From Mobula birostris (taxonomy: Eukaryota), in contig NC_092380.1 of NCBI RefSeq assembly GCF_030028105.1, positions 70,119,717 to 70,183,716 of the forward strand: a DNA stretch of 64,000 nt, read 5' to 3'. Below, in pieces: positions 47,921 through 52,880 of the stretch. Each line of letters begins with the position of its first letter. Positions within the stretch are counted from its first letter, which is position 1. The position numbers and the translations under genes are program-made. Below the pieces are notes generated by a model that was not told the DNA's origin, did not search any database, and saw nothing but the letters and a program-made list of their open reading frames with translations.

Positions 47921-47933
47921 ATCAGTGTCTTAA
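47921..47933 (+). repeat. 13-bp target-site duplication ATCAGTGTCTTAA (second copy at 52617-52629)
   Basis: Exact direct repeat flanking the whole FAM102A+RTE insertion; single copy at the orthologous position in the other array units. Confidence 0.9.
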
Positions 47934-48612
47934 GCCTCCTTTCCACTTGCTTTACTCTCAGAGCCGTCCTCCCACACTCAGCGCCTGCACCGCAGGCAGA
48001 GTAGTTGCCGGCCGTCGGAGGCCTCTGTGGTGTGGGCAGAGCGCCGGTTCGCTGCCTGGTGACGATGTCAGCCCTGCTCTGTGCTGATGCCCTGCTTCCA
48101 GGAAGACCACTGTGGGCCCAGCGCCGACCCCTGGGTAACCGCACCTGATTTTCGTTCCAGTCTCGCAGACCCGGGCTCCAGCCTTCACGGCCTCTGCCGC
48201 TCGCTTTTTGACCAACGCGCCTCTCCCCCGTCTCATTCCTTCGGCTTGCCAATTTCTCGGACCGTGACTGGGTAACGGGACGCCTCTGGGGTGGGGGGGG
48301 GGGTGGTGGGAGAGAAAGTGGACCATGGGAAAACACCGTCCGCCCATGGCTTTCATAATGAAAAAGAAGAAATTCAAGTTCCAGACGAGCTTCAACCTGG
48401 AGGAGTTGGCCGCCGTTCCCTTCGTCAACGGTGTGCTTTTCTGTAAGATCCGCCTTCTGGATGGAGGCGATTTCACCCAACTTTCATCCAGACAGGAAGT
48501 TCAGGAGAATTGTGTTCGTTGGAAGAAAAAATTTTCTTTCATCTGCAAGATGACTGCAAATCCTGCAACTGGTGTACTAGATCCTTGCACTTGCAGAGTA
48601 TCTGTACATAAG
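47934..48612 (+). pseudogene. FAM102A: Intronless retrocopy fragment of FAM102A/EEIG1: GC-rich 5'UTR + codons 1-89 (ATG at 48346)
   Basis: [43 protein letters not shown]...ENCVRW...[18 protein letters not shown] is the EEIG1 N-terminal NT-C2 domain. Homology ends at K89. Confidence 0.88.
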
Positions 48613-51600
48613 GTGACCATCCCAACGGCGGAGCAGGCGGAAGAGGAGACATCTCCCAACGGCTGCAAAGGCGGATGAGGATGCCCAACAATGGGTAGGG
48701 AGGCTTGCGAGCATGCCGCAAGAACCGCCGTAGACCCACAACACTCAGGGCTTGTCTACCTAGTGTGTGAAGCCTGGATTCGGCGGACTGCGCGGAAGAA
48801 ACCATCACTGGTTCAACGGGCATAAAGGCGATTTTCAGCAATGCGTCGTGCAGCGCTAAGAGGGCACAGTGAGACACACAGAACACTGCTGGCCATCCAT
48901 TGCATCCTGACCTATCTCCAGCCGTCTCGACTATGTCTTGCCGCTGGGTCCAGATGGGCCGGGACGAGAGAGTGAGGCTGACGACCTGCGCAACTCTCCC
49001 TCACTTTAATCGAAGTCAAGCGCAAGTCATGACTTCAAACCCAACGCACAACCTAAAGTCCTGTGGCGATGGGGGAGTGGCGAAGCAGCAGGTACGGATA
49101 CACTGGAAGCTGTAGTCACAAACCTGCACACAGGCGGCCCAGGGCATATGGTCGCTCTCTACTGGACCGAAGCAGCAGTTGAGTTCGGCAGCCCCCTGGG
49201 TGTCTGAGCAGCCCTCTTTAGGATCGCTCTGCTCACCTCCATGGAGGAAGGGGCTAGAAAGGGTGCCTCAAACATAGTCTGCTTCACTTCACCCTGGCCA
49301 GCTTACCGCGGCTGGTGGGGATCCCTCATAGCGGTCGACCTACAACAGTGAAGAAGAAAGTGATGGTGCTCAACCTTGGCACATGAAACGTGAGAACTCT
49401 GCGAGATAACATCAAGGCAGACAGACCAGAGAGAAGAACTGCACTGGTTGCAAAAGAGCTAGCTCACTACAACGTGGACATAGCAGCTCTCAGTGAAACG
49501 CACCTAGCAGACAAGGGCCAGCTGACAGAACGTAGTGGTGGATACACGTTCTTCTGGAGCGGTCGCAGCAGCGCTGAACGACGAGAAGCAGGCGTGGGAT
49601 TTGTCATCAATTCTAACCTCGCCCGTAAACTCACCAAGCACCCAGAGAGCATCAACGACCGCCTTATGACACTTCAGCTCCCACTTGCAAACAAGAAGAG
49701 TGCTTCGCTGATTAGTGCCTAAGCTCCCACCATAACCAACCCAGATGACATTAAAGACAAGTTCTATGAAGGACCTGACGCCCTCATCTCAGCAATCCCA
49801 CAGTCAGAGAAGCTCATCCTTCTCGGGGACTTCAATGCCAGAGTAGAGACAGACTACCAAACCTGGGAAGGGATCGTTGGAAGACACGGCACTGGCAAGT
49901 GTAATAACAACGACCTTCTGCTCCTCAAGACGTGTGCCACACATGACCTTGTCATCACCAACACCCTGTTCCGCTTACCCACCCATAAGAAGACGTCATG
50001 GATGCACCCACGCTCGAAGCACTGGCATCTGATTGACTACATCATCACCAGGAAGAGGGACAGGATGGATGTCAGAGTGATGAGAGCCATGTGTGGTGCC
50101 GACTGCTGGACCGACCACCGCCTCATTGTGTCCAAGTTCAGGCTTCGCATTCTGCCCATGAGAAGACCCCAAGGGCATAAGACTGCAAAGAGGCTGAATG
50201 TCTCCAAGCTGAAAAGCACCAGGGTTGCAGAAGAATTCGTCGATGACCTTGAAGGCAGACTGCCAGACACACCACAGGATGATGGGACCAGCGTTGAGGA
50301 ACAGTGGACGACCTTCAGAGATGCTGTCTACACTACCGCCCTCGAACATCTCGGACCAGCAACCCGAAGAAACCAAGACTGGTTCGATGAGAATGATGAA
50401 GAAATACGGGCACTACTAATGGAGAAACATCAACATTACAGAGCGCATCAGAACGACCCCACATTGCTAGCCAAGAAAGGTGCCTTTACCAATGCATGAA
50501 GAAAGGTGCAGAAAAAACTTAGCGAGATGCAGGACAGCTGGTTCAGCAAGAAGGCCGATGAAATCCAGGGCTACGCAGACAGCCACGACATAAAGCGCTT
50601 CTACGATGCGCTTAAGGCTGTATACGGACCCCAGTCCTCCGGCTCCTCACCCCTCCTCAACGCAGATGAGACGCAGCTGCTGACAGAGAAGAAGCAGATT
50701 CTGGATCGATGGGCTGAGCACTTTAACAACGTCCTTAATCGCCCTGCCGACATCAACGACGAGACCATTGCCCGCCTGCCCCAGGTAGAGATTGACAAGA
50801 GTCTTGACACCCTTCCCACAGTAGGTGAAGTCAGGAAGGCAGTGAAGCAACTCTCCTGTGGCAAAACGCCAGGACCCGATGCAATCCCTGCTGAGGTATA
50901 CAAAGCAGGAGGCCCTGTCATGATGCAAAAGCTGACTGTACTCTTCCTGTCCACGTGGAAAAAGGGACAGGTCCCGCAACAGCTGAAAGATGCCAGCATA
51001 GTCCACATCTACAAGAGGAAAGGCAACCGCCAGTCTTGCGACAACCACCGAGGCATCTCCCTCTTGTCCACTGCAGGGAAGATTCTGGCCTGCGTCCTGC
51101 TCAACCGCCTTCTTCAACATCTTGAGCAAGGTCTGCTCCCAGAAAGCCAGTGCGGCTTCCGTGCAGAACGTGGGACTGCGGACATGATCTTTGCTGCGCG
51201 CCAACTCCAGGAAAAATGCCAGGAGCAACACAGCGACCTCTTCGTGACCTTTGTCGATCTAACCAAGGCTTTTGATACGGTCAGCAGAGAAGGATTGTGG
51301 AAGATCATGGAGAAGTTTGGCTGCCCCAGCAAGTTCATCCAATCGTCCGGCAGTTCCACGACGGTATGATGGTGAAAGTTCTGGATGACGGCGATGAGTC
51401 GGAGGCCTTCCCAGTGACAAATGGCGTCAAACAAGGCTGCGTTCTTGCCCCGACTCTGTTCAGTATGGTATTCTCTGCCATGCTGACCGATGCCTTCCGT
51501 AACTACGAAGAAGGAATCCACATCAGGTACAGGACTGATGGCAGGTTGTTCAACCTTAGGCGCCTGCAGGCAGTTACAAAGGTGCAAGAGACTGTCATCA

Positions 51601-52616
51601 GAGACTTCTTGTTTGCTGATGACTGCACACTCAACGCCAGCACAGAGCAGGAGATGCAGCGTGAAATGGACTGCTTCTCACAAGCCTGCGACAACTTCGG
51701 TCTCACTATCAGCACCAAAAAGACCGAAGTTATGTACCAGACTGCCCCAGGAAAGCCATACCAGGAGCCGCGCATCACAGTGAAGGGCCAGAACCTCCAG
51801 GCAGCGACAACTTCACCTACCTGGGCAGCATACTCTCTCGCGCAGTGAACATAGACGCTGAGGTCAACAACAGGATTGCCAAAGCCAGCACCGCCTTTGG
51901 GAGACTCCATGAGAATGTCTGGGAGCGGAGAGGACTCAGCCTTACCACCAAGCTGAAGGTCTACTGTGCAGTGGTCCTTACCACCCTCCTTTACGTCAGC
52001 GGGACCTGGACTGTCTACATCAGACACGCCAAACAGCTCAACCACTTTCACCTGAGCTGTCTCCGCAGACTCCTCCACATCAGGTGGCAGGACAAAGTCC
52101 CCAACACGGAAATCCTGATACGAGCTGGGCTCTGCAGCGTCTACACCCTCCTGCTGAAAGTCCAAGCCAGGTGGGCTGGACATGCGGTCAGAATGCCAGA
52201 CAGCCGATTCCTAAGCAGCTGCTGTACGGAGAACTGTGTCAGGGCAAGCGCTCAGTCAGGGGGCAGAAGAAACGTTACAAAGACTGCCTCAAAGCGTCCC
52301 TCAAAGGCCTGGGTGTCAACATCAACACGTGGGAGACGCTTGCCCTCGACCGTCCAGCTTGGCGCAGCAAGATCACCACAGGAGCCCGTGCAGCTGAAGT
52401 CAGGCGCATCATCGAGGCGCAACGACAGCGCGCTGTGCGCAAGGCCCGAGCAGCATCCACTGCCACGACAGCACCCACCCACTTGTGTCCCACATGTGGG
52501 CGAGCCTTCAGGGCCCGGATTGGCCTCATCAGTCTCCTCCGGATCCACAGTACCAATCTCCCATTTCACTTTGAAGCCATGGTGATCTTCGACTACGAAG
52601 GGCGAACAACAACAAC
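48613..52616 (+). mobile_element. Near full-length RTE-clade LINE, decayed
   Basis: Single ORF from about 49363: APE (LGT*NVRTL, GDFNARV, HWHLIDYI), RT (QCGFR, FVDLTKAFD, GVKQGCVLAP, LFADD), C-terminal CPTCGRAFRARIGL and a (CAA)n tail. At least 3 stops (49384, 49720, 50497) and about 3 frameshifts. Confidence 0.92.
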
Positions 52617-52880
52617 ATCAGTGTCTTAACAGTTTGGATAGGAGAAAAAAATTCATCATTCAGAGCTGTGAGGAAACTATGAAGCCATCTTCAAGGCAGA
52701 AATTGAAAGATATTGGAAAATAAAGTCTGTGGGGCCAGTACAGAGATATAACTCTGCAATAAAAAAAACAAAGCCTGGCATGATCTTATTGAATAGAAAA
52801 GCAGCCATGAGAAGCCAAATGGCTTAGCCTGCTTCTTATGGTACAATGTGACTGCAGACTTGGTTAGAATGGGTATTTAC

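Follow-up and report, generated by a model that had tools for sequence, protein, structure and literature searches.

A young insertion in Mobula birostris that joins the first two exons of FAM102A to an RTE-like LINE

In the human mRNA/L1 5′ chimeras, such as RAP1GDS1/L1PA2, PALLD, CREM, and MAP3K13, the first exons of a host gene lie in sense orientation and without their introns in front of a near-complete long interspersed nuclear element (LINE), with the host part ending at a splice donor, the LINE part sometimes starting after an AG, and one pair of target-site duplications (TSDs) enclosing the whole (10.1101/2025.02.02.635956). Of the 17 chimeras catalogued, six have host parts whose ends coincide exactly with splice donors, and one has a proven intronic source (10.1101/2025.02.02.635956). 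The same exon-to-retrotransposon pattern is found in SVA exon trapping (MAST2-SVA F1 and other non-canonical SVAs), in which splicing connects an upstream exon of the host with a cryptic acceptor in an intronic retrotransposon, and the two are then retrotransposed together (PMC6139936). Here we describe a locus in Mobula birostris (assembly GCF_030028105.1, contig NC_092380.1, positions 70,119,717 to 70,183,716; this stretch of 64,000 nucleotides is hereafter called the window), at which exons 1 and 2 of the host gene FAM102A, also named EEIG1, are joined to an RTE-like LINE. Four of the six features that define a splice-type host-exon/LINE chimera are present, namely a TSD with an empty site, 5′ exons in sense orientation without their intron, a host part that stops at a genuine donor site, and a LINE part preceded by an AG in longer copies, and the locus works like the splice-type chimeras of L1 and SVA.

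The resemblance to each of the described systems is incomplete. In contrast to the human chimeras, the element is an RTE-like LINE with a single open reading frame (ORF) and an (AAC)n tail, whereas L1 has poly(A), and the host is a cartilaginous fish. SVA is non-autonomous and its chimeras founded amplifying subfamilies (PMC6139936), whereas the present chimera has not been amplified. Template-switch chimeric retrogenes (U6/L1, 5S/L1, and fungal MINE) likewise consist of cDNA from two RNAs within one TSD pair and contain a 5′-truncated LINE 3′ part; however, their 5′ parts are mostly complete small RNAs attached at the 3′ ends, whereas here the 5′ part derives from the beginning of an mRNA and breaks off at an exon boundary. 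Finally, RTE-clade LINEs headed by HDV-like ribozymes (HDV, hepatitis delta virus) possess a single ORF for an apurinic endonuclease (APE)-type endonuclease and a reverse transcriptase, a short 3′ untranslated region (UTR), and a microsatellite tail, and their read-through transcription from the host would fit the present locus (PMC6765202), but the part of the LINE retained here has no ribozyme match. A limited literature search, which is not proof of absence, found no host-exon/LINE chimera of RTE type or from an elasmobranch.

Insertion, target site, and age

Positions 47934–52616 of the window constitute a single insertion of 4683 bp inside a 13-bp TSD (ATCAGTGTCTTAA), the left copy of which (47921–47933) is exactly repeated at 52617–52629, directly after the (AAC)4 tail of the LINE. 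The length of the duplication is possibly 12 bp, as its first A may belong to the AAC tail. The surrounding DNA (31642–53321) is a tandem array of 2.48-kb units with 97–99.6% identity, and the 13-mer occurs once and uninterrupted in four neighbouring units, at 37985, 40478, 42959, and 45440, the last of which (45440–45452) is the nearest. At these four paralogous empty sites, the sequences that flank the insertion on the left and right adjoin each other directly (...aaggtATCAGTGTCTTAAcagtttgg...), and all 4683 bp are absent. The empty sites, located in the same window, place both ends of the insertion to the base, and no room is left for two separate events. The proposal of one retrotransposition event in the original prediction, for which separate TSDs would have meant two insertions, is thus borne out by the single TSD pair and the four empty sites, and no second repeat pair was found around the exon–LINE joint, where inner TSDs and inner poly(A) are both absent. 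A nested or double insertion was rejected on the same grounds, the single TSD pair and the absence of inner repeats.

It is scarcely credible that two independent insertions or an assembly artefact mimic one unit. In addition to the single TSD pair, the empty sites, and the lack of a TSD or poly(A) inside the unit, the 5′ junction is spanned without a mismatch by contigs assembled from short reads of the source sample, and the words that span the exon–LINE joint are found in DNA runs of the source sample only (two runs), being absent from the sister species and a third organism. In the same-species DNA run, contigs specific to the retrocopy and contigs specific to the parental gene have equal depths of ~7–8, and contigs shared by the two have a depth of ~14.7. 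These depths indicate two loci only, the parent and this copy, and hence no amplification of the chimera. The sister species has the parental form only. The insert is also set off from its surroundings in base composition, with a G+C content of 0.50–0.65 versus ~0.40 in the flanks. The observed/expected ratio of CpG is 0.6–0.7 across the whole insert versus 0.16–0.24 in the flanks, a contrast that shows the insert to be young. The insertion is a real, young, and single event.

The tandem array that received the insertion is itself young. Each of its units carries a C1-set immunoglobulin (Ig) exon on the minus strand, and the insertion is antisense to the array. The empty-site sequence is crossed by RNA contigs, and the array is therefore transcribed.

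The FAM102A exons and the LINE

The structure of the parental gene was derived from public contigs of the same species and of its sister species, with one DNA run and one RNA run for each. The host-derived part of the insert, on the plus strand, matches the FAM102A mRNA over 47958–48612. It begins with the 5′ UTR, the non-coding part of exon 1 (47958–48345; 65% G+C), which is covered by the mRNA contigs of both species and by genomic exon-1 contigs, and continues with the coding part of exon 1 (48346–48491), comprising codons 1–48 and two bases of codon 49. Exon 2 (48492–48612), which supplies the third base of codon 49 and all codons from there up to 89, is fused to exon 1 without intron 1. 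The 89 residues encoded by 48346–48612 match the Pfam domain NT-C2 of EEIG1/EHBP1 (E 9e-17) and are 80–85% identical to the N-termini of vertebrate FAM102A/EEIG1.

The mRNA contigs of both species are colinear with 47958–48613 and then enter exon 3, the start of which codes for ELKGGKAYSK. The genomic contigs, in contrast, are split in two, covering 47958–48491 and 48489/94–48616; those of exon 2 (2900 bp in the same species and 3283 bp in the sister species) run from 48489/94 to 48616 and then into intron 2. Past exon 2 they continue with GTATCTTGAAAATTC..., and past 48616 they read GTATCTTGAAAATTCATGAC.... From these splits, intron 1 is placed within codon 49 and the donor of exon 2 exactly at 48612/48613, the parental donor being CATAAG/GTGAGTAT (the gene reads CATAAG/GTGAGTATC). 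Intron 1 is absent from the insert, and the host homology stops after codon 89, exactly at the donor of exon 2. In the seahorse FAM102A gene, introns occupy the same two positions, and many database fragments end at residue 49/50 or begin at residues 43–49. The human gene structure given in the original prediction, with introns in codon 49 and after codon 89, was accordingly correct, since the contigs and the seahorse gene agree with it. The two claims built on that structure also hold. The removal of intron 1 follows from the colinear mRNA contigs and the genomic contigs split at 48491/48492, and the position of the joint on the exon-2 donor is accurate to the base, with the gene reading AAG/GTGAGTAT and the mRNA going on with ELKGGK. 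A classical processed pseudogene is ruled out, as the copy contains exons 1 and 2 only, has no poly(A), and ends in the LINE. No parental FAM102A protein of Mobula was found in the representative protein search; a search with the full-length teleost protein returned teleosts only, a search restricted to exon 2 gave five distant fragments and no Mobula exon-2 ORF, and pattern scans of metagenome contigs gave no match to the exon 2–intron 2 boundary or to the LINE 5′ start.

Relative to the retrocopy, the mRNA has 148 nt or more of additional sequence at its 5′ end, and the FAM102A copy is therefore 5′-truncated. Ahead of it, between the left TSD and the first matching base, lie 24 orphan nucleotides (47934–47957, plus strand), which are pyrimidine-rich, are followed by TCAG, and do not belong to FAM102A: the parental mRNA and gene contigs match from 47958 only and read ...GGCGAGGGAGCG upstream of it. 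Of the GC-rich 5′ UTR that had been predicted to open the insert, the segment 47958–48345 therefore stands, matching the mRNA, and the first 24 nt do not. The orphan nucleotides have no significant match to the rest of the window or to LINE heads, and a 7-mer that they have in common with exon 2 is at chance level. Together with the TCAG (47934–47961), they resemble a pyrimidine tract with a CAG acceptor (CCTCCTTTCCACTTGCTTTACTCTCAG); this is not the sequence upstream of 47958 in the parental gene or mRNA.

From 48613 onward, the insert is a high-copy element in the contigs of both species. It consists, on the plus strand, of 750 nt of retained 5′ UTR (48613–49362), in which no ribozyme match and no convincing ORF1 were found (the ORFs there have no Pfam match), an ORF of ~1080 codons (49363–52604), and the (AAC)4 microsatellite tail (52605–52616), read directly. 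An APE-type endonuclease (Exo_endo_phos; 49414–49689) and a reverse transcriptase (RVT_1; 51025–51755) lie in one frame path, reconstructed by a blastx map against homologues from 49363 to ~52604, and a CxxC...H motif is present at the C-terminal end. The ORF is interrupted by stops at 49384, 49720, and 50497 and by frameshifts near 51340, 51800, and 52080–52220; with six disabling lesions in 3.2 kb, the ORF may have been intact when it was inserted. The 3′ UTR is almost nil, the frame being open up to the (AAC)4 tail, and there is no poly(A).

The label RTE, given to the element in the original prediction, fits this architecture of a single ORF with endonuclease and reverse transcriptase, a short 3′ UTR, and a tandem-repeat tail; the clade assignment is by architecture, and a database protein search returned no clade name, the nearest proteins being unnamed or automatically named. 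The description "near full-length" holds for the span of the ORF, which is kept whole, but not for the 5′ end, and the ORF itself has the three in-frame stops and the three frameshifts. Several contigs from both species, and one RNA contig, represent other copies of the LINE that continue past the joint in the upstream direction, by 289 nt or more; thus, the copy in the chimera is truncated within its 5′ UTR and lacks a 5′ head of its own. No Rfam match to an HDV-like ribozyme was obtained in 47900–49400 at E values up to 10, in a copy from which the 5′ head of the family is absent.

The two parts of the insert appear equally old, given that an alignment of the FAM102A part to the mRNA of the same species shows differences at 11 of 615 bases (1.8%), apart from small indels, and the LINE part has ~1.3% private differences over 690 nt. 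Private variants of this LINE copy lie, for example, at 48714, 48726, 48764, 48823, 48834, 48851, 49012, and 49261. The differences in the FAM102A part include E50Q and S70T, and judging from its sequence this part looks unconstrained.

Several further observations concern the LINE family. The proteins closest to the reverse transcriptase region (50506–51366), with 65–82% identity, are from tapeworms, a softshell turtle, a rattlesnake, amphioxus, a shrimp, and marine snails. Such a patchy host spread is typical of horizontally moving RTE-type LINEs, and the distribution of these relatives suggests horizontal transfer of the LINE lineage. Within the 5′ UTR, the segment 48888–49049 has ~10 times the contig depth of the remaining element in both species, with loose ends at 48911/48914 and 49056, so that a separate high-copy element, perhaps SINE-like (of the short interspersed nuclear element type), appears to share this segment. 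Tandem "monomers" suspected by eye at the start of the 5′ UTR were not supported by Tandem Repeats Finder (TRF), and an assignment of the main 5′ end of the family from contig depth was dropped, because the depths are too uneven (447–2671 within 120 nt).

The exon–LINE joint and the making of the chimeric template

The joint lies somewhere within AAGGTGA (48610–48616, plus strand), seven nucleotides that are common to the exon 2/intron 2 boundary and the LINE 5′ UTR, with the gene contigs matching up to 48616 and the LINE copies matching from 48610. If the template was spliced, the joint is at 48612/48613. The longer LINE copies read ...CCATAGGCCAGTAACC ahead of AAGGTGACC, and the joint is preceded by an AG (..GTAACCAAG/GTGACC). 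An AG acceptor had been predicted to stand just before GTGACCATCCC, and it is present in the other LINE copies (..CCAAG/GTGACC).

We favour, with moderate confidence, an origin of the chimeric template by splicing of the exon-2 donor onto the AG of the LINE, either in cis or in trans. In this scheme, the FAM102A promoter would transcribe the gene, intron 1 would be removed, and the strong exon-2 donor (AAG/GTGAGT) would be spliced not to exon 3 but to the AG in the 5′ UTR of an RTE-like LINE, located on the same strand in a downstream intron (cis) or carried by a separate LINE transcript (trans). Splicing would at the same time remove the LINE 5′ head, where such elements are reported to carry a self-cleaving ribozyme, so that the host exons would stay attached. 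A LINE reverse transcriptase would then prime on the (AAC)n end of the RNA at a nicked site in the Ig-exon tandem array; synthesis would proceed through the LINE and both FAM102A exons, the second before the first, and over most of the 5′ UTR, and would end 148 nt or more before the start of the mRNA. Joining of this cDNA to the target with 24 extra nucleotides would complete the 12–13-bp duplication. The data show a single target-primed insertion of a cDNA in which LINE body, exon 2, exon 1, and 5′ UTR follow one another colinearly; we infer the splicing itself, its cis or trans form, and the source of the protein.

Splicing is favoured because the joint coincides to the base with an authentic donor and has an AG on the LINE side, and because the host part consists of the first exons in sense orientation and is followed by the entire LINE ORF. 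It is further favoured because the pattern matches those of the human mRNA/L1 chimeras (10.1101/2025.02.02.635956) and of SVA exon trapping (PMC6139936), and because RTE elements are reported to be promoter-less and to depend on host introns, from which they are transcribed behind HDV-like ribozymes (PMC6765202). The equal age of the FAM102A and LINE parts, the occurrence of a single event, and the intron positions conserved in seahorse were also counted for it.

Several points weigh against this origin. Splicing explains the AG only and does not need the 7-nt identity of AAGGTGA; between CATAAG/GTGAGT in the gene and CCAAG/GTGACC in the LINE, an overlap of at least 7 nt at a random joint has a chance of ~5e-4, and the five bases beyond the AG, four of them intronic, would be roughly a 1-in-1000 coincidence under splicing, by our estimate of this conditional figure. 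The acceptor is weak, being an AAG preceded by ~50% pyrimidines, with a TAG and a CAG located 14 and 9 nt upstream, which the spliceosome would normally prefer. Moreover, the 7-nt overlap and the 24 orphan nucleotides set the locus apart from the human mRNA/L1 chimeras, and the orphan nucleotides show that sequence was added in this event, at least once, either without a template or from another one. The source LINE was not located, with parental intron 2 read over its first 34 nt only. The exon 2–LINE joint occurs in no RNA contig and no indexed RNA run, among few RNA runs and in contigs that drop rare forms.

The main alternative, a template switch guided by microhomology, would account for the 7-nt identity. 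The enzyme would leave the LINE RNA inside the 5′ UTR, the new cDNA end, complementary to AAGGTGA, would pair with the same heptamer at the exon 2/intron 2 boundary of a FAM102A pre-mRNA from which intron 1 had been removed and in which intron 2 was retained, and synthesis would continue to near the mRNA 5′ end; this pre-mRNA could be a second molecule or, with the LINE lying within the gene, the very read-through RNA already being copied. Template jumping is established for non-LTR (lacking long terminal repeats) reverse transcriptases, as in R2 and in L1 chimeras. The overlap (p ~5e-4) includes the intron bases GTGA, which only an unspliced intron 2 offers, and this explanation alone accounts for their identity. 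In addition, AAGGTGA is the donor consensus, so that by a rough estimate ~10% of such heptamers in pre-mRNA would be donors, and the orphan 24 nt point to a further non-colinear addition in the same event. The switch must, however, land inside an RNA, whereas the known L1 chimeras mostly join at the 3′ end of the second RNA (10.1101/2025.02.02.635956), and it demands a specific splicing state, with intron 1 out and intron 2 in. Nor does it predict a whole LINE ORF, sense orientation, and first-exon content, which are the signature of the human splice-type chimeras. We regard such a switch as a real but less probable alternative. Template switching had been named as the alternative in the original prediction, and it survives in this one form; a switch onto the mature mRNA was rejected, as the overlap would then be 4 nt only, and the intron bases TGA would be left unexplained.

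The exact position of the joint could also be obtained without any acceptor, by a jump or ligation onto a free exon 1–exon 2 splicing intermediate, which the first step of splicing sets free with its end exactly at the donor. Human L1 chimeras in which donor-ending exons are joined to the first L1 bases, with no acceptor, provide a precedent (10.1101/2025.02.02.635956). On the LINE side, however, the joint is internal to longer copies that extend at least 289 nt upstream, rather than at an evident RNA end, and the identity of GTGA again goes unexplained. A free intermediate is therefore quite improbable as the source.

The 7-nt overlap and the exact position would also be accounted for if, in a FAM102A allele that has since been lost, a 5′-truncated LINE had first been inserted via AAGGTGA at the exon-2 donor, and the read-through exon 1–exon 2–LINE transcript had then been retrotransposed. 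For L1, microhomology is a familiar feature where the 5′ end of a truncated insertion meets its target. In both species, however, a normal intron 2 directly follows the donor (GTGAGTATCTTG...), and the additional insertion would have to destroy a conserved donor and then vanish, which makes this history very improbable. The intron-2 contigs of both species stop 2777–2778 bp after exon 2, where a repeat common to both species presumably begins, ~2.78 kb into the intron.

Exon-carrying LINE insertions beyond L1 and SVA

The AG/GTGACC of the LINE could have a wider role, in that the RTE-like family, taken to be promoter-less, might regularly gain expression by splicing at this site onto host 5′ exons, and so replace its 5′ heads. 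Several copies in the two species, which switch to unrelated upstream sequence near the joint point, were counted for this extension, but we consider it unlikely. If it were true, the FAM102A chimera would show a non-L1 LINE in the act of capturing a CpG-island 5′ end.

Near 48607–48622, besides the main upstream form, some contigs of both species begin their LINE homology within a few bases of the joint point, behind unrelated sequences, in the forms ...TTCTTACGTCTTTGACC/AGGTGACC and ...CATTACCACACCACT/AGGTGACC. The family may tend to break or to be joined at this point, or the shared start may reflect chance truncations.

Returning to the chimera itself, for which splicing onto the LINE is the origin that we favour, the case is well bounded by the empty site, the parental gene structure, and a sister species without the insertion, and it offers a locus where splicing and template switching can be told apart via the parental intron. 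Insertions of LINEs that carry host exons are a route to exon shuffling and to new LINE 5′ ends or promoters, and have been documented so far almost only for mammalian L1 and SVA. That an RTE-like case occurs in a cartilaginous fish suggests a process bound neither to L1 biology nor to poly(A) recognition.

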